Origin: Cyanophora paradoxa CCMP329
Lineage: Eukaryota; Plantae; Glaucophyta
DNA length: 64,000 bases
NCBI GenBank assembly: GCA_004431415.1
Contig: QPMI01000251.1
Coordinates: 1-64,000 of the forward strand
Direction of reading: 5' to 3'
Shown here: positions 23,731-64,000 of the stretch, piece by piece
How positions within the stretch are numbered: the stretch's first letter is position 1
Layout of the letters: each line of letters starts with the position of its first letter
Notes under the pieces: generated by a model
The model's database searches: none
The model's input: the letters and a program-made list of their open reading frames with translations, nothing else
Told to the model about the DNA's origin: nothing
Program-made: the position numbers and the translations under genes

Positions 23731-24336
23731 CCCGGCCCCCTCGACCCCCCAAATCAAACAGACCGTCGACGTCTCTCGTCGCCCAGCACACTTCTCATCG
23801 CTAAGGCCCCCGCGGTCGGGCCCCGACCCGCGGCGGCCGGCGCATCTCAAGCTCCGCGGGAGCATGGAAACTTGAAACTTGCATGAAAGCTTCACACTGT
23901 ACACTGTGGAGCTGCGCAGCTCCACAGTGTACTTCGAGGCATGTACTGTTCGTGTACTTCGAGACTGTTCGTGTACTAGAGGCTCTGAGGTGGGGCTCAA
24001 GCGGGCTCGAGCCGGCAATTTGCGATTATCCTGGCCCATGCATGCAAGTACTGGGTTGTATGTATGAGGAGCTGGCGCTGTGCATGGTCGCTGAGCCACC
24101 AGCTATAGCTGAATTCGAATGCACTGCGGCACGCGCATGCACGCATCTACGCGTGCTTCTACGCCAAAAGGGGGACGTTCAGGGGCACGGGGGGTACATG
24201 GGGGAAGTTGAGGGGCAGGGGGGGCGCCAACGGGGGCGCGGTCGCTTCGGCCTCGGCCCCGGCGCGGCCGAGGGCGCCGGCGGAAGGCGCAGGGGGTACG
24301 CGCACTTCGGACTCCCTCCGCTGCTTGAGCGCGTTC

Positions 24337-35600: not shown

Positions 35601-38600
35601 CAACCGAAATCCGGGTGCGCACGCTGTTTTTAGAAGCTCTTCCAGCAGAAGAAATTCATAACACCTGTGCAGATGCACCTGCGGATGCTGAAGATGCTGC
35701 TTCTTGCGAGCCAAGTACTCTCGGCCGGAGTTCTGCCGCAGATGAGGCGTCCGGAGCTGGCGTCAGCGGAAATGCATCCTCTGGTACGACACCGTCAGCC
35801 GGAGGCGATTCTGGAGCAGGGATTGGTAAGGGGCCTGATCTTTCGAAGTTGGTGCGATGTGCCTGTTATCTGCATGACGAAGAATGCGACGTGCTTACTC
35901 TTCTACCATGCAGCCGGCGGGCGCCGTTCAAGACACAGCAGGCTCCGATGCATCTACGAGCATTCAAGCTCAGGCTGCTGGCGCTGCCACACCAGGAAGG
36001 CCGCGACGACAGCCTGTTTCCGCACCTGCAGTTGCACCTCCCAATGCCTCCCCTGGTTCTTCTCCAGTGCGTCCGTCTTAAACACTTCCTTTTCTCTCCG
36101 TCCTCTCTCGATACCAGATTCTGACTTTTCATTTTAGGCCAGTGGCCTTGGAGGGAAATCAAAGACAGAAGGCGAATTGACCCAGGCTGAAGCGGCAAAC
36201 GCGGCCAAAGCGGCTTCCGCGGCCAGAGATGGCGACGCGTCGGGGCCAGCAGCTGCAGTTCCGACGGATGCATCGGCCCCTACGCCTGCCGCAGCCTCAG
36301 GATCCGGCAGCGCAGCAGGAGAAGCAGCCAGGAATGCTGGCGCGGCAAGCGATGTCGCGGCAGCGGGGAGTGGCAGCAGTGCAGCTGCCGAAGCGTTCTC
36401 CTCCGCGTCTGGAGCGGCGGCACAGGCGAGTGGGGCGGCCGCAATCCAGGGCGGGCGTGCTGGCGACGGCAACGAAGCGGCTTCCGCGGCCAGAGATGGC
36501 GACGCGTCGGGGCCAGCAGCTGCAGTTCCGACGGATGCATCGGCCCCTACGCCTGCCGCAGCCTCAGGATCCGGCAGCGCAGCAGGAGAAGCAGCCAGGA
36601 ACGCTGGCGCGGCAAGCGATGTCGCGGCAGCGGGGAGTGGCAGCAGTGCAGCTGCCGAAGCGTTCTCCTCCGCGTCTGGAGCGGCGGCACAGGCGAGTGG
36701 GGCGGCCGCAATCCAGGGCGGGCGTGCTGGCGACGGCAACGAAGCGGCTTCCGCGGCCAGAGATGGCGACGCGTCGGGGCCAGCAGCTGCAGTTCCGACG
36801 GATGCATCGGCCCCTACGCCTGCCGCAGCCTCAGGATCCGGCAGCGCAGCAGGAGAAGCAGCCAGGAACGCTAGTGTGGCAAGCGATGGCGCGGCAGCGG
36901 GGAGTGGCAGCAGTGCAGCTGCCGAAGCGTTCTCCACCGCGTCTGGAGCGGCGGCACAGGCGAGTGGGGCGACCGCAATCCAGGGCGGGCGTGCTGGCGA
37001 CAGCAACGAAGCGGCTTCCGCGGCCAGAGATGGCGACGCGTCGGGGCCAGCAGCTGCAGTTCCGACGGACATCGATGCATTGGCCCCTGCACATGCGGCA
37101 GCCTCCGGATCAAGCGCAGCGCCGAGCGCGGCCGCAGGCCGCTCAAACCCCGACATTGGCTCAGACGTTGGAGTCGCAGCGCATGCAGACGCGTCAAGTC
37201 CTGCGCTGACAACAGGCTCTGCGTCCACCACCACAGCTGAGCAGGCAGTCAATAGTGCTGGCGCGGCTATAACTGGCTTAGCCGCGGCGGGCGACAGCAG
37301 CGCAGCTTCCAATGCAGCATCGGCCGCTCCTGGAGAAACTACAACAGTGCTGCTGGCCAGAGTGGAAAACACGGGCCCGATCTGGGTCTCCTGGTCGCTC
37401 AACGGCCATCCGTCCGACGTCAAGGAGAAGCCGAAGCTCGCGTCCACGACGGTCGAGCTGTGGACGCAGGGCGCTGAGCGGAAGTGTGTCGGGGCGTGGA
37501 AGGTGCCGGCGAGAGAAGGCAACCTCGTGTTCGACAGGCTCATATTGCACTGGGGCACGATGAAGCCGTCCACCTCGTGCGTCGCGCTTTGCACGCCGGG
37601 CCGCGCCGTGATGCCTTCACGTCTGAACTGCGCCGGCGTTGACCGCGAGAACGCTCGTGCAGGTACGACGTGCGGGTGTGGGGCATGCCGGAGGGCGACA
37701 AGGTGCCGGTGGTGGCGGATGGTTTGAAGGTGACGACTCGCGCCCTGAATGCAGGTGAGCCGTGGGCTTCCCGCTTTTGCGTCTGCGCCGGCCTTGCTGG
37801 CACGATAGCTATAGTACGGTGATCTTCGATTGCGAGCACGCGGATGTTGAGCGTGCAATAGAGTGTGCAACGAGAAGCCCGCGTTCGCGAGCTGACTGGC
37901 TCTGGGCGCGCCCGCAGGCGAAAAGCCGGCGTTGTTCGAGGCGCAGCCGGCGCAGCACTTCTACTACCGCCTGTCGACGCACTCGTCGCCGGTAACGGTG
38001 CAGCTGGCCGAGCTCGCGGGCGGCGGGTCGGTCGTCGATCTGTGGAACGCAATCAAGCGCCTGACGTACTACTCGCTGCCGGCCGCCGACAAGCCGCGGC
38101 TCGCGCTCGCGAGCGGCGAGGTCCTGAAGGTGCGCCGAGGCGCTGCGTTCCGCGTCCGCGCCCGCCCAGTGTCGTGTGGCGCAGATGCACGAGAGGGACG
38201 GTGCGGCGGTGCCGCTGCAGTCGACCCCGGCTCAGGCGGGGCGGTGCTGGAGGCGGGCGCGACGTGCTACATGAGCGTGTCGGCGAGCTACAGCACGCGG
38301 GCAAGGCGGCGGAGGGCCGGGACGTGTACGTGTCGTGGGCGCTGAACGAGAAGTGGAAAGAGAAGGAGCCGCCTGTCTTCAACGAGATCTACGTGGAGCT
38401 GTGGGACGAGAGGACGCCCGAGCAGCGGGCGGAGTGGACGCTGCCGGCGAAGCACGGCGGGGTGGAGTTCAACGCGCTGCAGATGTTCGGGCTGGTGCTG
38501 CGATCGCGTGTGACGTGAGCCCTGGCGATGTTGTGGCGCGGGCAGCTCGAGGGGTCGCTGACGTGGGTGCAGGTACTGCTTGCGGTGTGGGGACGGTACG

Positions 38601-41600
38601 AGAGTGGGGCGCTGCCTGGGGAGACGAAGATCAACATTGGATCCCTGTCCTCCGGTGCGCTGCGCAGCCACGGGAGGACGTCAGTGGCGTTGCTGACGGA
38701 GAGACGGCCGCCCGCGCGCAGGCGACGTGGAGCCGGCGGACGAGGCGATCCTCGCGAAGCCGGCGACGGCGTTCTTCGTGGCGCACGGGACGACGACGAT
38801 GAAGTGGATCCAGCTCGCCAGCGGCGCCTCGACTCTCGGTCTCAAACAGGCGGTCGAGCGGGCGATGGGCCTCTCCGCGAACCGCAGGCGGCTGCGCATC
38901 GCGATGCCGGATGGCGAAGTTGTGCAGGCGTGCACCAGCTGCTCGCCGCCGTGCTTGGCGTTCAGTCACTCACGCCGTCCGCGCGCAGCCGTACTCGGCA
39001 GATGCGAAGGAGATACCGCTCGCGAAGACGCCCCTGAAACCGGGCAGCATCCTCACCGCCAAAGACCTCGGCGATTTCTACCTGCACTCCTGCCAATCTT
39101 CGTCGGGGCCGGTGTGGATCCACTGGGACCTTAACGGCCATCCGTCCGACGTCAAGGAGAAGCCGAAGCTCGCGTCCACGACGGTCGAGCTGTGGACGCA
39201 GGGCGCTGAGCGGAAGTGTGTCGGGGCGTGGAAGGTGCCGGCGAGAGAAGGCAACCTCGTGTTCGACAGGCTCATATTGCACTGGGGCACGATGAAGCCG
39301 TCCACCTCGTGCGTCGCGCATTGCACACCGGGCCGCGCCGTGATGCCTTCACGTCTGAACTGCGCCGGCGCTGACCGCGAGAACGCTCGTGCAGGTACGA
39401 CGTGCGGGTGTGGGGCATGCCGGAGGGCGACAAGGTGCCGGTGGTGGCGGATGGTTTGAAGGTGACGACTCGCGCCCTGAATGCAGGTGAGCCGCGGGCT
39501 TCCCGCTTTTGCGTCTGCGCCGGCCTTGCTGGCACGATAGTACGGTGATCTTCGATTGCGAGCACGCGGATGTTGAGCGTGCAATAGAGTGTGCAACGAG
39601 AAGCCCGCGTTCGCGAGCTGACTGGCTCTGGGCGCGCCCACAGGCGAAAAGCCGGCGTTGTTCGAGGCGCAGCCGGCGCAGCACTTCTACTACCGCCTGT
39701 CGACGCACTCGTCGCCGGTAACGGTGCAGCTGGCCGAGCTCGCGGGCGGCGGGTCGGTCGTCGATCTGTGGAACGCAATCAAGCGCCTGACGTACTACTC
39801 GCTGCCGGCCGCCGACAAGCCGCGGCTCGCGCTCGCGAGCGGCGAGGTCCTGAAGGTGCGCCGAGGCGCTGCGTTCCGCGTCCACGCCCGCCCAGTGTTG
39901 TGTGGCGCAGATGCACGAGAGGGACGGTGCGGCGGTGCCGCTGCAGTCGACCCCGGCTCAGGCGGGGGCGGTGCTGGAGGCGGGCGCGACGTGCTACATG
40001 AGCGTGTCGGCGAGCTACAGCACGCGGGGCAAGGCGGCGGAGGGCCGGGACGTGTACGTGTCGTGGGCGCTGAACGAGAAGTGGAAAGAGAAGGAGCCGC
40101 CTGTCTTCAACGAGATCTACGTGGAGCTGTGGGACGAGAGGACGCCCGAGCAGCGGGCGGAGTGGACGCTGCCGGCGAAGCATGGCGGGGTGGAGTTCAA
40201 CGCGCTGCAGATGTTCGGGCTGTTGCTGCGATCGCGTGTGACGTGAGCCCTGGCGATGTTGTGGCGCGGGCAGCTCGAGGGGGTCGCTGACGTGGGTGCA
40301 GGTACTGCTTGCGGGTGTGGGGACGGTACGAGAGTGGGGCGCTGCCTGGGGAGACGAAGATCAACATTGGATCCCTGTCCTCCGGTGCGCTGCGCAGCCA
40401 CGGGAGGGACGTCAGTGGCGTTGCTGACGGGAGAGACGGCCGCCCCGCGCGCAGGCGACGTGGAGCCGGCGGACGAGGCGATCCTCGCGAAGCCGGCGAC
40501 GGCGTTCTTCGTGGCGCACGGGACGACGACGATGAAGTGGATCCAGCTCGCCAGCGGCGCCTCGACTCTCGGTCTCAAACAGGCGGTCGAGCGGGCGATG
40601 GGCCTCTCCGCGAACCGCAGGCGGCTGCGCATCGCGATGCCGGATGGCGAAGTTGTGCAGGCGTGCACCAGCTGCTCGCCGCCGTGCTTGGCGTTCAGTC
40701 ACTCACGCCGTCCGCGCGCAGCCGTACTCGGCAGATGCGAAGGAGATACCGCTCGCGAAGACGCCCCTGAAACCGGGCAGCATCCTCACCGCCAAAGACC
40801 TCGGCGATTTCTACCTGCACTCCTGCCAATCTTCGTCGGGGCCGGTGTGGATCCACTGGGACCTTAACGGCCATCCGTCCGACGTCAAGGAGAAGCCGAA
40901 GCTCGCGTCCACGACGGTCGAGCTGTGGACGCAGGGCGCTGAGCGGAAGTGTGTCGGGGCGTGGAAGGTGCCGGCGAGAGAAGGCAACCTCGTGTTCGAC
41001 AGGCTCATATTGCACTGGGGCACGATGAAGCCGTCCACCTCGTGCGTCGCGCATTGCACACCGGGCCGCGCCGTGATGCCTTCACGTCTGAACTGCGCCG
41101 GCGCTGACCGCGAGAACGCTCGTGCAGGTACGACGTGCGGGTGTGGGGCATGCCGGAGGGCGACAAGGTGCCGGTGGTGGCGGATGGTTTGAAGGTGACG
41201 ACTCGCGCCCTGAATGCAGGTGAGCCGCGGGCTTCCCGCTTTTGCGTCTGCGCCGGCCTTGCTGGCACGATAGTACGGTGATCTTCGATTGCGAGCACGC
41301 GGATGTTGAGCGTGCAATAGAGTGTGCAACGAGAAGCCCGCGTTCGCGAGCTGACTGGCTCTGGGCGCGCCCGCAGGCGAAAAGCCGGCGTTGTTCGAGG
41401 CGCAGCCGGCGCAGCACTTCTACTACCGCCTGTCGACGCACTCGTCGCCGGTAACGGTGCAGCTGGCCGAGCTCGCGGGCGGCGGGTCGGTCGTCGATCT
41501 GTGGAACGCAATCAAGCGCCTGACGTACTACTCGCTGCCGGCCGCCGACAAGCCGCGGCTCGCGCTCGCGAGCGGCGAGGTCCTGAAGGTGCGCCGAGGC

Positions 41601-44600
41601 GCTGCGTTCCGCGTCCGCGCCTGCCCAGTGTCGTGTGGCACAGATGCACGAGAGGGACGGTGCGGCGGTGCCGCTGCAGTCGACCCCGGCTCAGGCGGGG
41701 GCGGTGCTGGAGGCGGGCGCGACGTGCTACATGAGCGTGTCGGCGAGCTACAGCACGCGGGGCAAGGCGGCGGAGGGCCGGGACGTGTACGTGTCGTGGG
41801 CGCTGAACGAGAAGTGGAAAGAGAAGGAGCCGCCTGTCTTCAACGAGATCTACGTGGAGCTGTGGGACGAGAGGACGCCCGAGCAGCGGGCGGAGTGGAC
41901 GCTGCCGGCGAAGCACGGCGGGGTGGAGTTCAACGCGCTGCAGATGTTCGGGCTGGTGCTGCGATCGCGTGTGACGTGAGCCCTGGCGATGTTGTGGCGC
42001 GGGCAGCTCGAGGGGGTCGCTGACGTGGGTGCAGGTACTGCTTGCGGGTGTGGGGACGGTACGAGAGTGGGGCGCTGCCTGGGGAGACGAAGATCAACAT
42101 TGGATCCCTGTCCTCCGGTGCGCTGCGCAGCCACGGGAGGGACGTCAGTGGCGTTGCTGACGGGAGGGACGGCCGCCCCGCGTGCAGGCGACGTGGAGCC
42201 GGCGGACGAGGCGATCCTCGCGAAGCCGGCGACGGCGTTCTTCGTGGCGCACGGGACGACGACGATGAAGTGGATCCAGCTCGCCAGCGGCGCCTCGACT
42301 CTCGGTCTCAAACAGGCGGTCGAGCGGGCGATGGGCCTCTCCGCGAACCGCAGGCGGCTGCGCATCGCGATGCCGGATGGCGAAGTTGTGCAGGCGTGCA
42401 CCAGCTGCTCGCCGCCGTGCTTGGCGTTCAGTCACTCACGCCGTCCGCGCGCAGCCGTACTCGGCAGATGCGAAGGAGATACCGCTCGCGAAGACGCCCC
42501 TGAAACCGGGCAGCATCCTCACCGCCAAAGACCTCGGCGATTTCTACCTGCACTCCTGCCAATCTTCGTCGGGGCCGGTGTGGATCCACTGGGACCTTAA
42601 CGGCCATCCGTCCGACGTCAAGGAGAAGCCGAAGCTCGCGTCCACGACGGTCGAGCTGTGGACGCAGGGCGCTGAGCGGAAGTGTGTCGGGGCGTGGAAG
42701 GTGCCGGCGAGAGAAGGCAACCTCGTGTTCGACAGGCTCATATTGCACTGGGCACGATGAAGCCGTCCACCTCGTGCGTCGCGCATTGCACACCGGGCCG
42801 CGCCGTGATGCCTTCACGTCTGAACTGCGCCGGCGCTGACCGCGAGAACGCTCGTGCAGGTACGACGTGCGGGTGTGGGGCATGCCGGAGGGCGACAAGG
42901 TGCCGGTGGTGGCGGATGGTTTGAAGGTGACGACTCGCGCCCTGAATGCAGGTGAGCCGCGGGCTTCCCGCTTTTGCGTCTGCGCCGGCCTTGCTGGCAC
43001 GATAGTACGGTGATCTTCGATTGCGAGCACGCGGATGTTGAGCGTGCAATAGAGTGTGCAACGAGAAGCCCGCGTTCGCGAGCTGACTGGCTCTGGGCGC
43101 GCCCGCAGGCGAAAAGCCGGCGTTGTTCGAGGCGCAGCCGGCGCAGCACTTCTACTACCGCCTGTCGACGCACTCGTCGCCGGTAACGGTGCAGCTGGCC
43201 GAGCTCGCGGGCGGCGGGTCGGTCGTCGATCTGTGGAACGCAATCAAGCGCCTGACGTACTACTCGCTGCCGGCCGCCGACAAGCCGCGGCTCGCGCTCG
43301 CGAGCGGCGAGGTCCTGAAGGTGCGCCGAGGCGCTGCGTTCCGCGTCCGCGCCCGCCCAGTGTCGTGTGGCGCAGATGCACGAGAGGGACGGTGCGGCGG
43401 TGCCGCTGCAGTCGACCCCGGCTCAGGCGGGGGCGGTGCTGGAGGCGGGCGCGACGTGCTACATGAGCGTGTCGGCGAGCTACAGCACGCGGGGCAAGGC
43501 GGCGGAGGGCCGGGACGTGTACGTGTCGTGGGCGCTGAACGAGAAGTGGAAAGAGAAGGAGCCGCCTGTCTTCAACGAGATCTACGTGGAGCTGTGGGAC
43601 GAGAGGACGCCCGAGCAGCGGGCGGAGTGGACGCTGCCGGCGAAGCACGGCGGGGTGGAGTTCAACGCGCTGCAGATGTTCGGGCTGGTGCTGCGATCGC
43701 GTGTGACGTGAGCCCTGGCGATGTTGTGGCGCGGGCAGCTCGAGGGGGTCGCTGACGTGGGTGCAGGTACTGCTTGCGGGTGTGGGGACGGTACGAGAGT
43801 GGGGCGCTGCCTGGGGAGACGAAGATCAACATTGGATCCCTGTCCTCCGGTGCGCTGCGCAGCCACGGGAGGGACGTCAGTGGCGTTGCTGACGGGAGAG
43901 ACGGCCGCCCCGCGCGCAGGCGACGTGGAGCCGGCGGACGAGGCGATCCTCGCGAAGCCGGCGACGGCGTTCTTCGTGGCGCACGGGACGACGACGATGA
44001 AGTGGATCCAGCTCGCCAGCGGCGCCTCGACTCTCGGTCTCAAACAGGCGGTCGAGCGGGCGATGGGCCTCTCCGCGAACCGCAGGCGGCTGCGCATCGC
44101 GATGCCGGATGGCGAAGTTGTGCAGGCGTGCACCAGCTGCTCGCCGCCGTGCTTGGCGTTCAGTCACTCACGCCGTCCGCGCGCAGCCGTACTCGGCAGA
44201 TGCGAAGGAGATACCGCTCGCGAAGACGCCCCTGAAACCGGGCAGCATCCTCACCGCCAAAGACCTCGGCGATTTCTACCTGCACTCCTGCCAATCTTCG
44301 TCGGGGCCGGTGTGGATCCACTGGGACCTTAACGGCCATCCGTCCGACGTCAAGGAGAAGCCGAAGCTCGCGTCCACGACGGTCGAGCTGTGGACGCAGG
44401 GCGCTGAGCGGAAGTGTGTCGGGGCGTGGAAGGTGCCGGCGAGAGAAGGCAACCTCGTGTTCGACAGGCTCATATTGCACTGGGGCACGATGAAGCCGTC
44501 CACCTCGTGCGTCGCGCATTGCACACCGGGCCGCGCCGTGATGCCTTCACGTCTGAACTGCGCCGGCGTTGACCGCGAGAACGCTCGTGCAGGTACGACG

Positions 44601-47600: not shown

Positions 47601-50600
47601 AGATGCGAAGGAGATACCGCTCGCGAAGACGCCCCTGAAACCGGGCAGCATCCTCACCGCCAAAGACCTCGGCGATTTCTACCTGCACTCCTGCCAATCT
47701 TCGTCGGGGCCGGTGTGGATCCACTGGGACCTTAACGGCCATCCGTCCGACGTCAAGGAGAAGCCGAAGCTCGCGTCCACGACGGTCGAGCTGTGGACGC
47801 AGGGCGCTGAGCGGAAGTGTGTCGGGGCGTGGAAGGTGCCGGCGAGAGAAGGCAACCTCGTGTTCGACAGGCTCATATTGCACTGGGGCACGATGAAGCC
47901 GTCCACCTCGTGCGTCGCGCATTGCACACCGGGCCGCGCCGTGATGCCTTCACGTCTGAACTGCGCCGGCGTTGACCGCGAGAACGCTCGTGCAGGTACG
48001 ACGTGCGGGTGTGGGGCATGCCGGAGGGCGACAAGGTGCCGGTGGTGGCGGATGGTTTGAAGGTGACGACTCGCGCCCTGAATGCAGGTGAGCCGCGGGC
48101 TTCCCGCTTTTGCGTCTGCGCCGGCCTTGCTGGCACGATAGTACGGTGATCTTCGATTGCGTGCACGCGGATGTTGAGCGTGCAATAGAGTGTGCAACGA
48201 GAAGCCCGCGTTCGCGAGCTGACTGGCTCTGGGCGCGCCCGCAGGCGAAAAGCCGGCGTTGTTCGAGGCGCAGCCGGCGCAGCACTTCTACTACCGCCTG
48301 TCGACGCACTCGTCGCCGGTAACGGTGCAGCTGGCCGAGCTCGCGGGCGGCGGGTCGGTCGTCGATCTGTGGAACGCAATCAAGCGCCTGACGTACTACT
48401 CGCTGCCGGCCGCCGACAAGCCGCGGCTCGCGCTCGCGAGCGGCGAGGTCCTGAAGGTGCGCCGAGGCGCTGCGTTCCGCGTCCGCGCCTGCCCAGTGTC
48501 GTGTGGCGCAGATGCACGAGAGGGACGGTGCGGCGGTGCCGCTGCAGTCGACCCCGGCTCAGGCGGGGGCGGTGCTGGAGGCGGGCGCGACGTGCTACAT
48601 GAGCGTGTCGGCGAGCTACAGCACGCGGGGCAAGGCGGCGGAGGGCCGGGACGTGTACGTGTCGTGGGCGCTGAACGAGAAGTGGAAAGAGAAGGAGCCG
48701 CCTGTCTTCAACGAGATCTACGTGGAGCTGTGGGACGAGAGGACGCCCGAGCAGCGGGCGGAGTGGACGCTGCCGGCGAAGCACGGCGGGGTGGAGTTCA
48801 ACGCGCTGCAGATGTTCGGGCTGGTGCTGCGATCGCGTGTGACGTGAGCCCTGGCGATGTTGTGGCGCGGGCAGCTCGAGGGGGTCGCTGACGTGGGTGC
48901 AGGTACTGCTTGCGGGTGTGGGGACGGTACGAGAGTGGGGCGCTGCCTGGGGAGACGAAGATCAACATTGGATCCCTGTCCTCCGGTGCGCTGCGCAGCC
49001 ACGGGAGGGACGTCAGTGGCGTTGCTGACGGGAGGGACTGCCGCCCCGCGCGCAGGCGACGTGGAGCCGGCGGACGAGGCGATCCTCGCGAAGCCGGCGA
49101 CGGCGTTCTTCGTGGCGCACGGGACGACGACGATGAAGTGGATCCAGCTCGCCAGCGGCGCCTCGACTCTCGGTCTCAAACAGGCGGTCGAGCGGGCGAT
49201 GGGCCTCTCCGCGAACCGCAGGCGGCTGCGCATCGCGATGCCGGATGGCGAAGTTGTGCAGGCGTGCATCAGCTGCTCGCCGCCGTGCTTGGCGTTCAGT
49301 CACTCACGCCGTCCGCGCGCAGCCGTACACGAAGGACGCGACGGAGATCCCGCTCGCCAAGACGCCCGCAAAGTCGGGCAGCATTCTCGTCGCGCGGGAC
49401 CTCGGCGAGTACTACCTCAGCGTCGGGACCAGCTACGAGGGCCCCGTGTATGTCTATTGGTCGCTCATCGGGCAGCCGTCCGACGCGAAGGCGAAGCCGA
49501 AGCTCGCGCACGTGATGGTCGAGCTGTGGACGCAGGGCGCAGAGAGCAAGCGTGTGGGGCTGTGGAAGGTGCCCGCGTCCGAGGGAAGCGTCGTGTTCAA
49601 CCAGGTCGTGCTGCACTGGGGCACGATGAAGCCTTCTACGCAGTGCGCGCGGCAGTGCTGCGCGCTCGCGATTTCCATGCTGCATCTTCACCAGGGGATG
49701 CCTGATCACTCTACGTGCCCGCGCAGGTACGGCGTGCGGGTGTGGACGATTCCGGAGCTGGAGGGCGAAACAGTGCCGCTGGTGTCGGACATCGTGGGCA
49801 AGAAGACGCGCGCCCTAAACTCGGGTGAGTGCCGTGCAGCGGGCTATAGAAGCGCGTGCTCCATTCGTGAACTGCACGGTTCTCACGATGCGCTCTCGCC
49901 TCGCTCGTCCCCGCAGGAGAGACGCCCGCGCTTTTCAACTCGCAGCCCGACCTGCACCTCTTCTACCGGCGGACGGGTGACAGCTCGCCGGTGACGCTGC
50001 AGCTGGCCGAGATGGCAGAGGGCGCGACGGGTGTCGACCTCACTACCATGATCAAGCGCGTCTCCGTGTACTCGGTTCCAGAGGCTGCAAAGCAGCAGCT
50101 GTCTCTCGCAAGCGGCGACGCGATCAAGGTTCGTCGTATTCTACTCTCGATGCCGGATCGCCGATCGGTTTACTCGACGTGCAGATGTACGCGGCGGACG
50201 GCACGCCTGTGCAGCTCACGGCGTCGGGTGTCACTCGGGGTGTGGTAGTGGCCATCGGCGGGAGTTTCTACATGAGCGCGTCAGCCGGTTTCAGCTCGCG
50301 AAGCAAAGCGGTGGAGGGGCGAGACGTGACGGTCTCATGGGCCCTCTTGGGGGAGGCGAAAGGATCAGGGCCGCCCGTCTTCCACGAGATGTACGTGGAG
50401 CTGTGGGAGGAGAAGACACCGGAGACGCGAGCCGAGTGGACGCTGCCTGCGAAGCACGGCGAGGTGCAGTTCAGCGCGCTGCAGATGTTCGGGCTGGTGC
50501 TGCGGTCAAGCACGACGTGAGCCGGGTCGATTGACGAAGCGCTGGAAGGCGATGGCTGATGCCGCTGCGCGGCACGCAGGTACTGCGTGCGAGTGTGGGG

Positions 50601-53600
50601 CCGGTACGAGCAGGGCTCGCTCACGGCGGAGACGAAGCTCTCCATCGGATCCCTGTCGTCGGGTTCGTCCCTTGCCGTGCTGCTTTCGCATTCCGAGCGT
50701 ATTGCCCGAAAGGCTGATCTCGTTGCGCAGGCGACGTGGAGCCGGCGGACGAGGCGATCCTCGCGAAGCCGGCGACGGCGTTCTTCGTGGCGCACGGGAC
50801 GACGACGATGAAGTGGATCCAGCTCGCCAGCGGCGCCTCGACTCTCGGTCTCAAACAGGCGGTCGAGCGGGCGATGGGCCTCTCCGCGAACCGCAGGCGG
50901 CTGCGCATCGCGATGCCGGATGGCGAAGTTGTGCAGGCGTGCACCAGCTGCTCGCCGCCGTGCTTGGCGTTCAGTCACTCACGCCGTCCGCGCGCAGCCG
51001 TACTCGGCAGATGCGAAGGAGATACCGCTCGCGAAGACGCCCCTGAAACCGGGCAGCATCCTCACCGTCAAAGACCTCGGCGATTTCTATCTGCACTCCT
51101 GCCAATCTTCGTCGGGGCCGGTGTGGATCCACTGGGACCTTAACGGCCATCCGTCCGACGTCAAGGAGAAGCCGAAGCTCGCGTCCACGACGGTCGAGCT
51201 GTGGACGCAGGGCGCTGAGCGGAAGTGTGTCGGGGCGTGGAAGGTGCCGGCGAGAGAAGGCAACCTCGTGTTCGACAGGCTCATATTGCACTGGGGCACG
51301 ATGAAGCCGTCCACCTCGTACGTCGCGCGTTGCACGCCGGGCCGCGCCGTGATGCCTTCACGTCTGAACTGCGCCGGCGTTGACCGCGAGAACGCTCGTG
51401 CAGGTACGACGTGCGGGTGTGGGGCATGCCGGAGGGCGACAAGGTGCCGGTGGTGGCGGATGGTTTGAAGGTGACGACTCGCGCCCTGAATGCAGGTGAG
51501 CCGCGGGCTTCCCGCTTTTGCGTCTGCGCCGGCCTTGCTGGCACGATAGTACGGTGATCTTCGATTGCGAGCACGCGGATGTTGAGCGTGCAATAGAGTG
51601 TGCAACGAGAAGCCCGCGTTCGCGAGCTGACTGGCTCTGGGCGCGCCCGCAGGCGAAAAGCCGGCGTTGTTCGAGGCGCAGCCGGCGCAGCACTTCTACT
51701 ACCGCCTGTCGACGCACTCGTCGCCGGTAACGGTGCAGCTGGCCGAGCTCGCGGGCGGCGGGTCGGTCGTCGATCTGTGGAACGCAATCAAGCGCCTGAC
51801 GTACTACTCGCTGCCGGCCGCCGACAAGCCGCGGCTCGCGCTCGCGAGCGGCGAGGTCCTGAAGGTGCGCCGAGGCGCTGCGTTCCGCGTCCGCGCCTGC
51901 CCAGTGTCGTGTGGCACAGATGCACGAGAGGACGGTGCGGCGGTGCCGCTGCAGTCGACCCCGGCTCAGGCGGGGCGGTGCTGGAGGCGGGCGCGACGTG
52001 CTACATGAGCGTGTCGGCGAGCTACAGCACGCGGGCAAGGCGGCGGAGGGCCGGGACGTGTACGTGTCGTGGGCGCTGAACGAGAAGTGGAAAGAGAAGG
52101 AGCCGCCTGTCTTCAACGAGATCTACGTGGAGCTGTGGGACGAGAGGACGCCCGAGCAGCGGGCGGAGTGGACGCTGCCGGCGAAGCACGGCGGGGTGGA
52201 GTTCAACGCGCTGCAGATGTTCGGGCTGGTGCTGCGATCGCGTGTGACGTGAGCCCTGGCGATGTTGTGGCGCGGGCAGCTCGAGGGGGTCGCTGACGTG
52301 GGTGCAGGTACTGCTTGCGGGTGTGGGACGGTACGAGAGTGGGCGCTGCCTGGGGAGACGAAGATCAACATTGGATCCCTGTCCTCCGGTGCGCTGCGCA
52401 GCCACGGGAGGGACGTCAGTGGCGTTGCTGACGGGAGGGACTGCCGCCCCGCGCGCAGGCGACGTGGAGCCGGCGGACGAGGCGATCCTCGCGAAGCCGG
52501 CGACGGCGTTCTTCGTGGCGCACGGGACGACGACGATGAAGTGGATCCAGCTCGCCAGCGGCGCCTCGACTCTCGGTCTCAAACAGGCGGTCGAGCGGGC
52601 GATGGGCCTCTCCGCGAACCGCAGGCGGCTGCGCATCGCGATGCCGGATGGCGAAGTTGTGCAGGCGTGCATCAGCTGCTCGCCGCCGTGCTTGGCGTTC
52701 AGTCACTCACGCCGTCCGCGCGCAGCCGTACACGAAGGACGCGACGGAGATCCCGCTCGCCAAGACGCCCGCAAAGTCGGGCAGCATTCTCGTCGCGCGG
52801 GACCTCGGCGAGTACTACCTCAGCGTCGGACCAGCTACGAGGGCCCGTGTATGTCTATTGGTCGCTCATCGGGCAGCCGTCCGACGCGAAGGCGAAGCCG
52901 AAGCTCGCGCACGTGATGGTCGAGCTGTGGACGCAGGGCGCAGAGAGCAAGCGTGTGGGGCTGTGGAAGGTGCCCGCGTCCGAGGGAAGCGTCGTGTTCA
53001 ACCAGGTCGTGCTGCACTGGGGCACGATGAAGCCTTCTACGCAGTGCGCGCGGCAGTGCTGCGCGCTCGCGATTTCCATGCTGCATCTTCACCAGGGGAT
53101 GCCTGATCACTCTACGTGCCCGCGCAGGTACGGCGTGCGGGTGTGGACGATTCCGGAGCTGGAGGGCGAAACAGTGCCGCTGGTGTCGGACATCGTGGGC
53201 AAGAAGACGCGCGCCCTAAACTCGGGTGAGTGCCGTGCAGCGGGCTATAGAAGCGCGTGCTCCATTCGTGAACTGCACGGTTCTCACGATGCGCTCTCGC
53301 CTCGCTCGTCCCCGCAGGAGAGACGCCCGCGCTTTTCAACTCGCAGCCCGACCTGCACCTCTTCTACCGGCGGACGGGTGACAGCTCGCCGGTGACGCTG
53401 CAGCTGGCCGAGATGGCAGAGGGCGCGACGGGTGTCGACCTCACTACCATGATCAAGCGCGTCTCCGTGTACTCGGTTCCAGAGGCTGCAAAGCAGCAGC
53501 TGTCTCTCGCAAGCGGCGACGCGATCAAGGTTCGTCGTATTCTACTCTCGATGCCGGATCGCCGATCGGTTTACTCGACGTGCAGATGTACGCGGCGGAC

Positions 53601-56600: not shown

Positions 56601-59600
56601 TGGGCAAGAAGACGCGCGCCCTAAACTCGGGTGAGTGCCGTGCAGCGGGCTATAGAAGCGCGTGCTCCATTCGTGAACTGCACGGTTCTCACGATGCGCT
56701 CTCGCCTCGCTCGTCCCCGCAGGAGAGACGCCCGCGCTTTTCAACTCGCAGCCCGACCTGCACCTCTTCTACCGGCGGACGGGTGACAGCTCGCCGGTGA
56801 CGCTGCAGCTGGCCGAGATGGCAGAGGGCGCGACGGGTGTCGACCTCACTACCATGATCAAGCGCGTCTCCGTGTACTCGGTTCCAGAGGCTGCAAAGCA
56901 GCAGCTGTCTCTCGCAAGCGGCGACGCGATCAAGGTTCGTCGTATTCTACTCTCGATGCCGGATCGCCGATCGGTTTACTCGACGTGCAGATGTACGCGG
57001 CGGACGGCACGCCTGTGCAGCTCACGGCGTCGGGTGTCACTCGGGGTGTGGTAGTGGCCATCGGCGGGAGTTTCTACATGAGCGCGTCAGCCGGTTTCAG
57101 CTCGCGAAGCAAAGCGGTGGAGGGGCGAGACGTGACGGTCTCATGGGCCCTCTTGGGGGAGGCGAAAGGATCAGGGCCGCCCGTCTTCCACGAGATGTAC
57201 GTGGAGCTGTGGGAGGAGAAGACACCGGAGACGCGAGCCGAGTGGACGCTGCCTGCGAAGCACGGCGAGGTGCAGTTCAGCGCGCTGCAGATGTTCGGGC
57301 TGGTGCTGCGGTCAAGCACGACGTGAGCCGGGTCGATTGACGAAGCGCTGGAAGGCGATGGCTGATGCCGCTGCGCGGCACGCAGGTACTGCGTGCGAGT
57401 GTGGGGCCGGTACGAGCAGGGCTCGCTCACGGCGGAGACGAAGCTCTCCATCGGGTCCCTGTCGTCGGGTTCGTCCCTTGCCGTGCTGCTTTCGCATTCC
57501 GAGCGTATTGCCCGAAAGGCTGATCTCGTTGCGCAGGCGACGTGGAGCCGGCGGACGAGGCGATCCTCGCGAAGCCGGCGATGGCCTTCTTCGTGGCGCA
57601 CGGGACGACGACGATGAAGTGGATCCAGCTCGCCAGCGGCGCCTCGACTCTCGGTCTCAAACAGGCGGTCGAGCGGGCGATGGGCCTCTCCGCGAACCGC
57701 AGGCGGCTGCGCATCGCGATGCCGGATGGCGAAGTTGTGCAGGCGTGCACCAGCTGCTCGCCGCCGTGCTTGGCGTTCAGTCACTCACGCCGTCCGCGCG
57801 CAGCCGTACTCGGCAGATGCGAAGGAGATACCGCTCGCGAAGACGCCCCTGAAACCGGGCAGCATCCTCACCGTCAAAGACCTCGGCGATTTCTATCTGC
57901 ACTCCTGCCAATCTTCGTCGGGCCGGTGTGGATCCACTGGGACCTTAACGGCCATCCGTCCGACGTCAAGGAGAAGCCGAAGCTCGCGTCCACGACGGTC
58001 GAGCTGTGGACGCAGGGCGCTGAGCGGAAGTGTGTCGGGGCGTGGAAGGTGCCGGCGAGAGAAGGCAACCTCGTGTTCGACAGGCTCATATTGCACTGGG
58101 GCACGATGAAGCCGTCCACCTCGTACGTCGCGCGTTGCACGCCGGGCCGCGCCGTGATGCCTTCACGTCTGAACTGCGCCGGCGTTGACCGCGAGAACGC
58201 TCGTGCAGGTACGACGTGCGGGTGTGGGGCATGCCGGAGGGCGACAAGGTGCCGGTGGTGGCGGATGGTTTGAAGGTGACGACTCGCGCCCTGAATGCAG
58301 GTGAGCCGCGGGCTTCCCGCTTTTGCGTCTGCGCCGGCCTTGCTGGCACGATAGTACGGTGATCTTCGATTGCGAGCACGCGGATGTTGAGCGTGCAATA
58401 GAGTGTGCAACGAGAAGCCCGCGTTCGCGAGCTGACTGGCTCTGGGCGCGCCCGCAGGCGAAAAGCCGGCGTTGTTCGAGGCGCAGCCGGCGCAGCACTT
58501 CTACTACCGCCTGTCGACGCACTCGTCGCCGGTAACGGTGCAGCTGGCCGAGCTCGCGGGCGGCGGGTCGGTCGTCGATCTGTGGAACGCAATCAAGCGC
58601 CTGACGTACTACTCGCTGCCGGCCGCCGACAAGCCGCGGCTCGCGCTCGCGAGCGGCGAGGTCCTGAAGGTGCGCCGAGGCGCTGCGTTCCGCGTCCGCG
58701 CCTGCCCAGTGTCGTGTGGCACAGATGCACGAGAGGGACGGTGCGGCGGTGCCGCTGCAGTCGACCCCGGCTCAGGCGGGGGCGGTGCTGGAGGCGGGCG
58801 CGACGTGCTACATGAGCGTGTCGGCGAGCTACAGCACGCGGGGCAAGGCGGCGGAGGGCCGGGACGTGTACGTGTCGTGGGCGCTGAACGAGAAGTGGAA
58901 AGAGAAGGAGCCGCCTGTCTTCAACGAGATCTACGTGGAGCTGTGGGACGAGAGGACGCCCGAGCAGCGGGCGGAGTGGACGCTGCCGGCGAAGCACGGC
59001 GGGGTGGAGTTCAACGCGCTGCAGATGTTCGGGCTGGTGCTGCGATCGCGTGTGACGTGAGCCCTGGCGATGTTGTGGCGCGGGCAGCTCGAGGGGGTCG
59101 CTGACGTGGGTGCAGGTACTGCTTGCGGGTGTGGGGACGGTACGAGAGTGGGGCGCTGCCTGGGGAGACGAAGATCAACATTGGATCCCTGTCCTCCGGT
59201 GCGCTGCGCAGCCACGGGAGGGACGTCAGTGGCGTTGCTGACGGGAGGGACGGCCGCCCCGCGCGCAGGCGACGTGGAGCCGGCGGACGAGGCGATCCTC
59301 GCGAAGCCGGCGACGGCGTTCTTCGTGGCGCACGGGACGACGACGATGAAGTGGATCCAGCTCGCCAGCGGCGCCTCGACTCTCGGTCTCAAACAGGCGG
59401 TCGAGCGGGCGATGGGCCTCTCCGCGAACCGCAGGCGGCTGCGCATCGCGATGCCGGATGGCGAAGTTGTGCAGGCGTGCACCAGCTGCTCGCCGCCGTG
59501 CTTGGCGTTCAGTCACTCACGCCGTCCGCGCGCAGCCGTACACGAAGGACGCGACGGAGATCCCGCTCGCCAAGACGCCCGCAAAGTCGGGCAGCATTCT

Positions 59601-62600
59601 CGTCGCGCGGGACCTCGGCGAGTACTACCTCAGCGTCGGGACCAGCTACGAGGGCCCCGTGTATGTCTATTGGTCGCTCAACGGGCAGCCGTCCGACGCG
59701 AAGGCGAAGCCGAAGCTCGCGCACGTGATGGTCGAGCTGTGGACGCAGGGCGCAGAGAGCAAGCGTGTGGGGCTGTGGAAGGTGCCCGCGTCCGAGGGAA
59801 GCGTCGTGTTCAACCAGGTCGTGCTGCACTGGGGCACGATGAAGCCTTCTACGCAGTGCGCGCGGCAGTGCTGCGCGCTCGCGATTTCCATGCTGCATCT
59901 TCACCAGGGGATGCCTGATCACTCTACGTGCCCGCGCAGGTACGGCGTGCGGGTGTGGACGATTCCGGAGCTGGAGGGCGAAACAGTGCCGCTGGTGTCG
60001 GACATCGTGGGCAAGAAGACGCGCGCCCTAAACTCGGGTGAGTGCCGTGCAGCGGGCTATAGAAGCGCGTGCTCCATTCGTGAACTGCACGGTTCTCACG
60101 ATGCGCTCTCGCCTCGCTCGTCCCCGCAGGAGAGACGCCCGCGCTTTTCAACTCGCAGCCCGACCTGCACCTCTTCTACCGGCGGACGGGTGACAGCTCG
60201 CCGGTGACGCTGCAGCTGGCCGAGATGGCAGAGGGCGCGACGGGTGTCGACCTCACTACCATGATCAAGCGCGTCTCCGTGTACTCGGTTCCAGAGGCTG
60301 CAAAGCAGCAGCTGTCTCTCGCAAGCGGCGACGCGATCAAGGTTCGTCGTATTCTACTCTCGATGCCGGATCGCCGATCGGTTTACTCGACGTGCAGATG
60401 TACGCGGCGGACGGCACGCCTGTGCAGCTCACGGCGTCGGGTGTCACTCGGGGTGTGGTAGTGGCCATCGGCGGGAGTTTCTACATGAGCGCGTCAGCCG
60501 GTTTCAGCTCGCGAAGCAAAGCGGTGGAGGGGCGAGACGTGACGGTCTCATGGGCCCTCTTGGGGGAGGCGAAAGGATCAGGGCCGCCCGTCTTCCACGA
60601 GATGTACGTGGAGCTGTGGGAGGAGAAGACACCGGAGACGCGAGCCGAGTGGACGCTGCCTGCGAAGCACGGCGAGGTGCAGTTCAGCGCGCTGCAGATG
60701 TTCGGGCTGGTGCTGCGGTCAAGCACGACGTGAGCCGGGTCGATTGACGAAGCGCTGGAAGGCGATGGCTGATGCCGCTGCGCGGCACGCAGGTACTGCT
60801 TGCGAGTGTGGGGCCGGTACGAGCAGGGCTCGCTCACGGCGGAGACGAAGCTCTCCATCGGGTCCCTGTCGTCGGGTTCGTCCCTTGCCGTGCTGCTTTC
60901 GCATTCCGAGCGTATTGCCCGAAAGGCTGATCTCGTTGCGCAGGCGACGTGGAGCCGGCGGACGAGGCGATCCTCGCGAAGCCGGCGACGGCGTTCTTCG
61001 TGGCGCACGGGACGACGACGATGAAGTGGATCCAGCTCGCCAGCGGCGCCTCGACTCTCGGTCTCAAACAGGCGGTCGAGCGGGCGATGGGCCTCTCCGC
61101 GAACCGCAGGCGGCTGCGCATCGCGATGCCGGATGGCGAAGTTGTGCAGGCGTGCACCAGCTGCTCGCCGCCGTGCTTGGCGTTCAGTCACTCACGCCGT
61201 CCGCGCGCAGCCGTACACGAAGGACGCGACGGAGATCCCGCTCGCCAAGACGCCCGCAAAGTCGGGCAGCATTCTCGTCGCGCGGGACCTCGGCGAGTAC
61301 TACCTCAGCGTCGGGACCAGCTACGAGGGCCCCGTGTATGTCTATTGGTCGCTCAACGGGCAGCCGTCCGACGCGAAGGCGAAGCCGAAGCTCGCGCACG
61401 TGATGGTCGAGCTGTGGACGCAGGGCGCAGAGAGCAAGCGTGTGGGGCTGTGGAAGGTGCCCGCGTCCGAGGGAAGCGTCGTGTTCAACCAGGTCGTGCT
61501 GCACTGGGGCACGATGAAGCCTTCTACGCAGTGCGCGCGGCAGTGCTGCGCGCTCGCGATTTCCATGCTGCATCTTCACCAGGGATGCCTGATCACTCTA
61601 CGTGCCCGCGCAGGTACGGCGTGCGGGTGTGGACGATTCCGGAGCTGGAGGGCGAAACAGTGCCGCTGGTGTCGGACATCGTGGGCAAGAAGACGCGCGC
61701 CCTAAACTCGGGTGAGTGCCGTGCAGCGGGCTATAGAAGCGCGTGCTCCATTCGTGAACTGCACGGTTCTCACGATGCGCTCTCGCCTCGCTCGTCCCCG
61801 CAGGAGAGACGCCCGCGCTTTTCAACTCGCAGCCGACCTGCACCTCTTCTACCGGCGGACGGGTGACAGCTCGCCGGTGACGCTGCAGCTGGCCGAGATG
61901 GCAGAGGGCGCGACGGGTGTCGACCTCACTACCATGATCAAGCGCGTCTCCGTGTACTCGGTTCCAGAGGCTGCAAAGCAGCAGCTGTCTCTCGCAAGCG
62001 GCGACGCGATCAAGGTTCGTCGTATTCTACTCTCGATGCCGGATCGCCGATCGGTTTACTCGACGTGCAGATGTACGCGGCGGACGGCACGCCTGTGCAG
62101 CTCACGGCGTCGGGTGTCACTCGGGTGTGGTAGTGGCCATCGGCGGGAGTTTCTACATGAGCGCGTCAGCCGGTTTCAGCTCGCGAAGCAAAGCGGTGGA
62201 GGGGCGAGACGTGACGGTCTCATGGGCCCTCTTGGGGGAGGCGAAAGGATCAGGGCCGCCCGTCTTCCACGAGATGTACGTGGAGCTGTGGGAGGAGAAG
62301 ACACCGGAGACGCGAGCCGAGTGGACGCTGCCTGCGAAGCACGGCGAGGTGCAGTTCAGCGCGCTGCAGATGTTCGGGCTGGTGCTGCGGTCAAGCACGA
62401 CGTGAGCCGGGTCGATTGACGAAGCGCTGGAAGGCGATGGCTGATGCCGCTGCGCGGCACGCAGGTACTGCTTGCGAGTGTGGGGCCGGTACGAGCAGGG
62501 CTCGCTCACGGCGGAGACGAAGCTCTCCATCGGGTCCCTGTCGTCGGGTTCGTCCCTTGCCGTGCTGCTTTCGCATTCCGAGCGTATTGCCCGAAAGGCT

Positions 62601-64000
62601 GATCTCGTTGCGCAGGCGACGTGGAGCCGGCGGACGAGGCGATCCTCGCGAAGCCGGCGACGGCGTTCTTCGTGGCGCACGGGACGACGACGATGAAGTG
62701 GATCCAGCTCGCCAGCGGCGCCTCGACTCTCGGTCTCAAACAGGCGGTCGAGCGGGCGATGGGCCTCTCCGCGAACCGCAGGCGGCTGCGCATCGCGATG
62801 CCGGATGGCGAAGTTGTGCAGGCGTGCACCAGCTGCTCGCCGCCGTGCTTGGCGTTCAGTCACTCACGCCGTCCGCGCGCAGCCGTACACGAAGGACGCG
62901 ACGGAGATCCCGCTCGCCAAGACGCCCGCAAAGTCGGGCAGCATTCTCGTCGCGCGGGACCTCGGCGAGTACTACCTCAGCGTCGGGACCAGCTACGAGG
63001 GCCCCGTGTATGTCTATTGGTCGCTCAACGGGCAGCCGTCCGACGCGAAGGCGAAGCCGAAGCTCGCGCACGTGATGGTCGAGCTGTGGACGCAGGGCGC
63101 AGAGAGCAAGCGTGTGGGCTGTGGAAGGTGCCCGCGTCCGAGGGAAGCGTCGTGTTCAACCAGGTCGTGCTGCACTGGGGCACGATGAAGCTTCTACGCA
63201 GTGCGCGCGGCAGTGCTGCGCGCTCGCGATTTCCATGCTGCATCTTCACCAGGGGATGCCTGATCACTCTACGTGCCCGCGCAGGTACGGCGTGCGGGTG
63301 TGGACGATTCCGGAGCTGGAGGGCGAAACAGTGCCGCTGGTGTCGGACATCGTGGGCAAGAAGACGCGCGCCCTAAACTCGGGTGAGTGCCGTGCAGCGG
63401 GCTATAGAAGCGCGTGCTCCATTCGTGAACTGCACGGTTCTCACGATGCGCTCTCGCCTCGCTCGTCCCCGCAGGAGAGACGCCCGCGCTTTTCAACTCG
63501 CAGCCCAACCTGCACCTCTTCTACCGGCGGACGGGTGACAGCTCGCCGGTGACGCTGCAGCTGGCCGAGATGGCAGAGGGCGCGACGGGTGTCGACCTCA
63601 CTACCATGATCAAGCGCGTCTCCGTGTACTCGGTTCCAGAGGCTGCAAAGCAGCAGCTGTCTCTCGCAAGCGGCGACGCGATCAAGGTTCGTCGTATTCT
63701 ACTCTCGATGCCGGATCGCCGATCGGTTTACTCGACGTGCAGATGTACGCGGCGGACGGCACGCCTGTGCAGCTCACGGCGTCGGGTGTCACTCGGGTGT
63801 GGTAGTGGCCATCGGCGGGAGTTTCTACATGAGCGCGTCAGCCGGTTTCAGCTCGCGAAGCAAAGCGGTGGAGGGGCGAGACGTGACGGTCTCATGGGCC
63901 CTCTTGGGGGAGGCGAAAGGATCAGGGCCGCCCGTCTTCCACGAGATGTACGTGGAGCTGTGGGAGGAGAAGACACCGGAGACGCGAGCCGAGTGGACGC
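28241..64000 (+). CDS. Giant multi-exon protein, 3'-truncated by the window: MLKL-like 4HB / beta-helix / helical insert / beta-helix / acidic coil / filamin-like Ig / Ala-rich linker / (FN3-like-Ubl)n array
   Basis: ATG at 28241. Exons 28241-28272, 28365-28465, 29326-29438 and 29489 onward join in frame via GT-AG and GC-AG introns. The junctions checked from the filamin exon (ending ~35613) through the linker (36138-37577) into the repeat array are also in frame, and no stop remains between modules after splicing. Not every junction in 29.7-35.2 kb was verified. Confidence 0.65.
28466..29325 (+). other. 860-bp C/pyrimidine-rich intron (intron 2 of the giant gene)
   Basis: GTGCGG donor at 28466 and GCAG acceptor ending 29325 keep the frame (Q-G-M). 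It contains multiple poly-C runs. Confidence 0.7.
29957..34110 (+). other. Right-handed parallel beta-helix (PbH1) region, split by an alpha-helical insert at about 31570-33040
   Basis: The pectin-lyase-like cap reads VNTAGDLRALL...CLEAGNYEL....LRVRRPLSIEG. Repeats include LRVDSGCLFLDSCDI, AFVRQCQVIGQSRGGIDV, LVVDNLVSNNG, INRNIIRENRSNGIY, FRENRIQANAKSGVGV and IAACTIFDNKG. Confidence 0.7.
35243..35613 (+). other. Filamin/ABP280-type Ig-like domain exon
   Basis: SELRLGVLLRDADG...IGPIRVHIRLGERPLLGSPITI matches the filamin repeat pattern (V.L.D..G ... G...V.V.+G..+.GSP). Confidence 0.55.
36209..37068 (+). repeat. Coding tandem repeat, ~3.2 x 267 bp (89 aa; Ala/Ser/Gly-rich)
   Basis: AASAARDGDASGPAAAVPTDASAPTPAAASGSGSAAGEAARN... 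recurs at about 36209, 36476, 36743 and 37010 within the open frame 36177-37727. Confidence 0.9.
37373..64000 (+). repeat. Tandem array of 16 or more intron-containing coding modules (type A ~1733 bp, type B ~1675 bp), each ~415 aa FN3-like/Ubl/FN3-like/Ubl
   Basis: Module starts: A' 37373, A 38989, A 40722, A 42455, A 44187, B 45918, A 47590, B 49323, A 50998, B 52726, A 54397, B 56129, A 57804, B 59536, B 61211, B 62883. Each module has six introns at equivalent positions. Confidence 0.95.

Follow-up and report, generated by a model that had tools for sequence, protein, structure and literature searches.

What is encoded by the long tandem array that occupies positions 37373 to 64000 of contig QPMI01000251.1 (assembly GCA_004431415.1) in the glaucophyte alga Cyanophora paradoxa CCMP329, and is it a gene that is transcribed, spliced and translated into one chain? 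The window analysed here is the whole stretch from position 1 to 64,000 of the forward strand of this contig (64,000 nt). A preliminary description, made from the letters alone, had proposed that each repeat module encodes two fibronectin type III (FN3) and two ubiquitin-like (Ubl) domains in alternation, named FN3-1, Ubl-1, FN3-2 and Ubl-2. In the present study we show that the locus is a nuclear gene of a GC-rich alga and that it is transcribed and spliced; the array encodes predicted ubiquitin-fold domains in alternation with FN3 domains, with no sites at which they could be released. On balance, we favour a real spliced gene whose product is one giant Ubl-FN3 chain acting as an extended modular rod or a multivalent scaffold.

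Layout of the array

A repeat search found 15 in-register copies from 37374 to the end of the window, with start-to-start distances of either 1731-1733 nt or 1671-1675 nt. The longest period admitted by Tandem Repeats Finder was 500, hence the array was not reported by that program. The two distances are the periods of two module types, A (1731-1733 nt) and B (1671-1675 nt), whose succession, as judged by exon sequence, is A A A A A B A B A B A B A B B B. Sixteen module starts were placed (37257, 38989, 40722, ... 62883), and the sixteenth module, truncated at 64000, shows about 295 codons; the window ends inside the array and the 3' end lies beyond view. With 1245 nt of coding sequence (415 codons) in an A module and 1251 nt (417 codons) in a B module, the part in view amounts to about 6,500 codons or residues in about 31 Ubl-FN3 pairs.

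37373..64000, + strand: tandem array of Ubl-FN3 modules, 15 complete, the sixteenth cut by the window end

The 15 modules and the additional 295 codons agree with the "about 30 pairs" of the preliminary description, and all peptides quoted there were recovered, 6-16 times each, in frames that rotate with module length. The tandem arrangement is also present in an independent DNA run (X13), in which a joint goes back by 1733 nt.

Exons, introns and transcript evidence

A six-exon model was read from one A module and transferred to all 16 module starts. AG/GT borders were found at five GT-AG introns in every one of these modules. The exons of the reference A module, together with the reference B module, are as follows.

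38989..39308, + strand: exon E1, C-terminal part of Ubl-2, a short linker and the FN3-1 strands up to ...MKPSTS; ends in phase 2
39395..39486, + strand: exon E2, last FN3-1 strands (YDVRVWG...VTTRALNAG); ends in phase 1, at the FN3/Ubl boundary
39644..39855, + strand: exon E3, N-terminal two thirds of Ubl-1 (HFYYRL...ASGEVLK); ends in phase 0
39911..40242, + strand: exon E4, C-terminal part of Ubl-1 and N-terminal strands of FN3-2; paralogue of E1
40302..40384, + strand: exon E5, last FN3-2 strands (YCLRVWG...GSLSSG); paralogue of E2
40455..40660, + strand: exon E6, N-terminal two thirds of Ubl-2 (AFFVAHGTTTMKWIQL...DGEVVQ); followed by a GC-AG intron at 40661-40721
49323..50997, + strand: reference B module, 1675 nt, with exons 49323-49642, 49727-49824, 49917-50128, 50185-50516, 50580-50662 and 50731-50936

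The phases at the ends of E1 to E6 are 2, 1, 0, 2, 1, 0. The series 2, 1, 0 is repeated, so that intron positions and phases agree between the two halves of a module. The third-position GC content of the array exons lies between 0.81 and 0.94.

In order to compare this model with transcripts, contigs of four public runs were aligned to one reference A module. Three of these runs (X1, X3 and X4, from three samples of two studies) carry the guessed label "RNA?", and the fourth is the older DNA run X13. Contigs from X1, X3 and X4 lack the introns and show the joints 39308>39395, 39486>39644, 39855>39911, 40242>40302 and 40384>40455, which are exactly the five predicted GT-AG introns, so that the splice sites read in the preliminary description are borne out. 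In X13 the introns are covered and none of the five splice joints occurs. Exact removal of GT-AG introns, of which the DNA run shows nothing, is difficult to account for unless X1, X3 and X4 are of RNA origin.

The ends of the RNA-like contigs also locate the last intron of the module. Those over E1 cover 38985-39308, with the next segment at 39395, and begin at 38985 through the shared letters GCAG, while the E6 contig extends to 40660. From these contig ends we infer that E6 finishes at 40660 and that a sixth intron, GC-AG (40661-40721), follows, which adds Val-Gln to the reading; the same joint, ...EVQPY..., is found in the spliced paralogue P0001 described below. A loose contig end before 40454 proved to be a B-type E5 joined to the shared E6. 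Since this B-type E5-E6 joint occurs among the RNA-like contigs, the B modules are spliced as well.

A spliced paralogue and other relatives

The window exons were searched singly; as a joined form, the spliced paralogue P0001 was used in their place. A profile of four E1/E4-type exons, searched against 1.84 billion representative proteins, gave two true relatives, both of the same family. These are P0001 (EukProt EP00741 Cyanophora paradoxa P006921, tig00001057_g6695.t1, 3359 aa), with 15 matched stretches, and P0002, a 123-aa genomic fragment. Three further candidates, P0003, P0004 and P0005, were rejected, their scores being sums of sub-threshold matches to unrelated repeats. A word search with exon E4 gave no match, and word searches with the whole of P0001 and with P0001:32-448 returned only P0001 itself. 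Searches of the ESM Atlas by features and by shape brought up FN3 proteins only, and no two-domain Ubl-FN3 analogue.

P0001 is a spliced paralogous array that stays open over 3359 residues. Its N-terminus is cut off, its C-terminal end is true, and the last modules before the C-terminus are diverged. Compared with the B-type exons it shows 75-86% identity in E1-E4, 100% in E5 and 76% in E6. Three of its modules contain, inside Ubl-2, a charged low-complexity insert of about 100 residues (residues ~1150-1255, 1668-1773 and 2186-2291), located between ...EVQTYTKDATEI and ...VKPGTILSVTDLG; this insert may represent an intron that was retained or wrongly called, or else a genuine loop insertion. 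Furthermore, a third, diverged module type was found on a 1817-nt Logan contig (L001, SRR31724264), with the same exon order and 75-80% DNA identity to type A. The first 30 nt of this contig equal its last 30 nt, and we thus read it as a collapsed tandem repeat of period 1787.

Predicted folds of the four domains

The input alignments for AlphaFold2 consisted of P0001 half-modules, to which the window exons were added as fragment rows. A four-domain alignment with half-module shifts was also made; in it MAFFT stacked identical segments only, and it was left unused for folding. Model 1, comprising Ubl-2 and FN3-1 (P0001:241-448), has a mean predicted local distance difference test (pLDDT) value of 67 and a predicted template-modelling score (pTM) of 0.57. 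Its secondary structure is beta-beta-alpha-beta...beta followed by seven strands, and the last Ubl strand continues without a break into the opening strand of the FN3 that follows.

Foldseek matched model 1 to SUMO fusions, ISG15, cytokine receptors and titin Fn3 domains. When the proteins of the Foldseek list were superposed with VIA-align, residues 15-97 of the model fitted ubiquitin, NEDD8 and ISG15 with Z 10.5-10.9 and a root-mean-square deviation (rmsd) of 1.7-2.0 Å over 73-75 residues. In an exhaustive scan of 48,161 chains, which did not depend on Foldseek, the UBL of Dsk2 took the first row (model residues 13-97, Z 11.1, rmsd 1.7 Å, 73/73 residues); ubiquitin itself fitted the model Ubl with Z 10.9 and rmsd 1.8 Å over 73/73 residues, at 15-19% identity in the structural alignments. 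Residues 98-205 superpose on the FN3 domains of fibronectin, adnectins, IL-7R alpha, LAR and others (Z 10.5-11.4, rmsd 1.9-2.8 Å, 86-98 residues). All of the top 50 rows of the exhaustive scan belong to the Ubl superfamily or to FN3.

Model 2 (P0001:32-240) covers Ubl-1 and FN3-2. Here FN3-2 is folded, with pLDDT 70-86 and FN3 matches at Z 9.4-10.4, but Ubl-1 was left unfolded at a pLDDT of about 33. In these predicted structures, Ubl-2 is a ubiquitin-like beta-grasp, and FN3-1 and FN3-2 are FN3 beta-sandwiches. AlphaFold and Foldseek were among the checks named in the preliminary description, which expected a beta-sandwich plus a beta-grasp; run on the half-modules of P0001, they returned the expected folds for Ubl-2 and FN3-1 in model 1 and for FN3-2 in model 2, and not for Ubl-1. 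The putative beta-grasp of Ubl-1 is argued for by its homology to Ubl-2 (profile-to-profile hhalign probability 91%, E 1e-6, 89 columns; 28-32% identity in alignments) and by the shared position and phase of the intron.

Family tests and the ends of the domains

At the level of sequence models the assignment is less direct. The hidden Markov model (HMM) of fn3 (PF00041) gave no match on the exons, on the whole spliced P0001 (E<=1) or on single domains (E<=10), and none of the six exons, searched singly, matched any Pfam family. Ubiquitin_2 (PF14560) was the one Pfam family to be touched at all; it scored 52.3 bits against a cut-off of 23.1 bits on whole P0001, as a sum of weak near-identical repeats. 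A single domain reached 16.2 bits (E 0.015, profile positions 7-82 of 86), below that cut-off. Profile searches of the PDB with Ubl-2, FN3 and combined Ubl profiles gave nothing significant; among the sub-significant rows were the Dsk2 UBL at E 0.5 and, at E ~1 in the FN3 search, two FN3 domains (collagen XX and DCC).

Two FN3 hallmarks are invariant in the six aligned domain types, namely the Trp of ..VSW.. and the Tyr of Y-x-x-R-[VL] (YSMRVW, YCVRVW, YIVRV). The secondary structure of the models assigns the former to strand B and the latter, the Tyr-corner, to strand F. The FN3 and ubiquitin assignment of the preliminary description is upheld in part, by the predicted folds of Ubl-2, FN3-1 and FN3-2 and, for FN3, by these residues, but not by an fn3 HMM match or by a single-domain Ubiquitin_2 score above the cut-off.

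No Ubl of the array ends in Gly-Gly. The Ubl-2 domains end in ...TAKDLG-DFYL and the Ubl-1 domains in ...VLEAGA-TCYM, and GG dipeptides occur only inside Ubl-1 (LAGGGS) and FN3-2 (KHGGVE). Because a C-terminal Gly-Gly is absent and the Ubl runs on directly into the FN3, these domains should not be releasable or conjugatable in the manner of ubiquitin, and the earlier statement that the array is no conjugatable polyubiquitin holds. Neither module type contains an N-x-S/T sequon. Cysteines common to the A and B forms are absent from FN3-1, Ubl-1 and Ubl-2, and there is one in FN3-2, in the YC.RVW motif.

Evolution of the array

Modules of the same type are 99-100% identical at the DNA level, introns included. 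Between types A and B the identity falls to 67-78% in exons E1-E5 and to 43-65% in the introns, with a ratio of nonsynonymous to synonymous changes (dN/dS) of about 0.48. In every module E6 and the GC-AG intron that follows it (40455-40721 and equivalents) are 100% identical between A and B. This tract is likely, judging from the pattern of identity, to be a site of unequal crossing-over or gene conversion, and exchange at the shared E6 segment could be the source of the shuffled A/B order. The locus is a clean example of concerted evolution, with near-identical modules and one exon plus intron common to both types.

The two halves of a module had been described as old paralogues of each other, and this is supported by 25-30% identity, by the hhalign comparison of Ubl-2 with Ubl-1 given above and by the same intron positions and phases. 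Of the three introns in each cassette, a single one coincides with a domain boundary. The remaining two interrupt domains, the FN3 ahead of its F strand and the Ubl about two thirds of the way along. From these intron positions within domains it follows that the duplicated unit was a three-exon Ubl-FN3 cassette and not a single domain.

Apparent frameshifts

Exon lengths are off by 1-3 nt in nine modules, which gives 22 differences in total. All 22 are single-base deletions in runs of G or C, mostly 3-5 long, with no insertion and none outside such runs. Relative to the sister modules they lie in exons at the following sites.

38238, 38299, 38584, 42750, 45385, 46832, 46933, 46942, 51930, 51972, 52033: single-base deletion sites
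52325, 52341, 52828, 52844, 53638, 53716, 57920, 61833, 62123, 63116, 63191: single-base deletion sites, continued

The first module carries three such deletions, which jointly restore the frame. At the reference A module, where the reads were compared, none of the four public runs shows an indel. Since all the differences fit the signature of homopolymer consensus errors, we read the frame as intact, and the 22 deletions are probably errors of long-read assembly or consensus. The public annotation probably breaks or omits the gene owing to these homopolymer errors in the assembly.

Sequence upstream of the array

The following features lie at the 5' end of the array.

37373..37576, + strand: first FN3 of the array (GPIWVSWSL...), where codon-position GC shifts from non-coding-like to coding-like
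36177..37372, + strand: open frame rich in Ala and Ser, in phase with the first FN3, without Met, third-position GC 0.51-0.57
36208-37069: 267-nt tandem repeat, 3.2 copies, 98% identity, open in several frames on both strands, third-position GC about 0.57

The acceptor of the first array exon should lie just upstream of 37373. We considered 36177-37372 as a coding N-terminal region and found this unlikely, given its third-position GC in comparison with that of the array exons. The composition of this frame suggests that it is probably an intron or untranslated region, and that the 267-nt repeat is a minisatellite within it.

Further upstream, coding-like signal occurs at 34221-34880, 31800-32250 and 29300-30120, and Pfam searches of the upstream open frames (29328-35120 and 36177-37574) gave nothing usable. 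The segment 34221-34880 is an ATG-initiated frame (MKWFEKYFVSSLVPQTEAARERMEKKL...) with a third-position GC of 0.85, directly preceded by 700 nt of low GC in which every frame is closed; either the array gene or a separate gene may start here. The open frame at 33237-33461 (...GIGIFVEASEG...NRNIIRENRSNGIYVSVPSR) recalls parallel beta-helix (PbH1) repeats and has no Pfam match. Finally, 2001-4000, 12001-14000 and 20001-24000 contain 81-87% G+C, far above the window average, and two of these segments show a strong negative AT skew.

Discussion

The array arose through successive duplications of a cassette of three exons, each copy encoding a predicted Ubl beta-grasp and, behind it, an FN3 beta-sandwich. 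A module of 415-417 residues is made up of two such cassettes, both old and diverged from each other, and no fewer than 15.7 near-identical modules stand head to tail. We propose that the product is one chain with about 6,500 residues in view, longer in reality, in which short linkers connect about 62 small beta-rich domains. The role of such a chain is most likely that of an extended modular rod or a multivalent scaffold. Unequal crossing-over or gene conversion, probably by way of the shared E6 and its intron, may keep the modules alike. Adjacent domains in tandem-repeat proteins stay dissimilar, which avoids misfolding. As direct neighbours in the array differ in fold, and the nearest neighbours of the same fold are only 25-30% identical, less misfolding between neighbours would be expected here too.

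Several points weigh against this proposal. On the side of transcription, the labels of the RNA-like runs are guesses, and contigs cannot prove a single transcript spanning the array. The homopolymer deletions, if real, would break the frame already in the first module. The structural assignment depends on a model of moderate confidence (mean pLDDT 67, the Ubl part about 62, with values of about 60-72), built from a shallow alignment of 15 rows from one family, with Ubl-1 left unfolded by AlphaFold2 in the other model; for a single domain, no sequence model exceeds its threshold. Neither end of the gene was seen, nor a signal peptide, a membrane helix or the protein itself, so that the rod or scaffold, whether inside or outside the cell, is a putative role.

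The frameshifts are also the starting point of a quite different explanation, in which the locus is a decaying, non-functional expressed satellite and the long protein is no longer made. The 22 single-base deletions in exons, which interrupt the frame as early as the first module, would fit such decay, but all of them lie in G or C runs, as long-read consensus errors do, and the reference module is free of indels in the four runs. The high third-position GC of the exons, their better conservation in comparison with the introns, a dN/dS of about 0.48 and the paralogue P0001, open over its 3359 residues, all argue for a maintained coding sequence, and we consider decay very improbable. Similarly small is the probability that we would assign to a polyprotein precursor from which, as with polyubiquitin, cleavage would free single Ubl, FN3 or Ubl-FN3 units. 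Head-to-tail repeats of a ubiquitin fold do recall polyubiquitin genes, and the Ubl-2 unit ends in ...DLG; however the Gly-Gly is missing at the Ubl ends, the two Ubl types end differently (DLG and AGA) and in the model the last Ubl strand continues into the FN3.

The remaining alternatives accept a long chain and differ in its use. It might be a secreted or surface protein of matrix or adhesion type, with the chain outside the cell, where most FN3 arrays lie; the beta-grasp domains would then provide stiff spacing or binding, a use known from some bacterial surface proteins. Extracellular proteins commonly contain FN3 arrays, many ectodomains are among the closest structural matches, and a signal peptide is possible inasmuch as the 5' end is not fixed. 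Nevertheless, the readable part shows no signal peptide or membrane helix, both module types lack N-x-S/T sequons, the cysteines common to A and B are limited to the one in FN3-2, and Ubls of the Dsk2 and ubiquitin type are overwhelmingly cytosolic or nuclear, which together make a surface protein unlikely. The preliminary description had suggested a bait or decoy, and this may be extended to a sensor in an immune or cell-death protein, whose Ubls would lure pathogen deubiquitinases, proteases or ubiquitin-binding effectors while an N-terminal executioner acts. To this we give little credence. Near-identical, rapidly homogenised repeats are indeed typical of fast-evolving loci, but nothing in these data links the upstream exons to the array, the ~2.5 kb from ~34900 to 37373 hold little coding signal, Pfam recognised no family upstream, and the Ubls lack the Gly-Gly tail that deubiquitinases grip. 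The single giant chain serving as rod or scaffold thus remains the explanation that we prefer. Within it, a bolder version would see a class of giant proteins invented by glaucophytes (probably >6,500 residues), with dozens of alternations between a non-cleavable ubiquitin fold and FN3, serving either as a titin-like mechanical element or ruler, or as a "permanent polyubiquitin" platform that recruits ubiquitin-binding proteins at high valency. The length of the chain could then be tuned by splicing that is cassette-wise and preserves the frame; we put this forward tentatively, as a possibility with the odds against it.

The ubiquitin and FN3 folds are among the best known in biology, and three groups of known proteins invite comparison. 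Polyubiquitin, ISG15 and FAT10 share with the array the head-to-tail succession of ubiquitin folds, and both ISG15 and ubiquitin rank high among its structural matches. They differ in that the array has no Gly-Gly site, its Ubls are separated by FN3 domains and the identity to ubiquitin is only 15-19%. Closer are the integral UBLs of Dsk2/ubiquilin, BAT3 and TBCB/TBCE (Ubiquitin_2), which likewise are uncleaved and without Gly-Gly, and of which the Dsk2 UBL is the best structural match. Those proteins, however, carry one or few UBLs, usually terminal, whereas here at least 31 are interleaved with FN3; moreover a single array domain scores 16 bits against the 23.1-bit cut-off of the family, so that by sequence it falls outside.

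In its general plan the array most resembles titin, obscurin and twitchin, which also consist of a very long chain of beta domains of about 100 residues with short linkers, in which two folds alternate, neighbours are dissimilar and FN3 is one of the folds. The partner fold is Ig in those proteins and a ubiquitin-like beta-grasp here. Furthermore, the modules of the array are 99-100% identical at the DNA level, introns included, its homologues among the 1.84 billion representative proteins are confined to the Cyanophora family, and it belongs to a unicellular alga without muscle, with no Ig, kinase or other end domain in view. The likeness to titin-type proteins is thus one of building principle only. 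Our literature searches found no description of a regular Ubl-FN3 alternation, and the novelty of the locus is not in either fold, both being known, but in the interleaving of Ubl with FN3 in a long regular array. If the array is made as one chain, giant modular proteins of the "beads on a string" kind arose independently outside animals, and the ubiquitin fold is usable as a structural bead.

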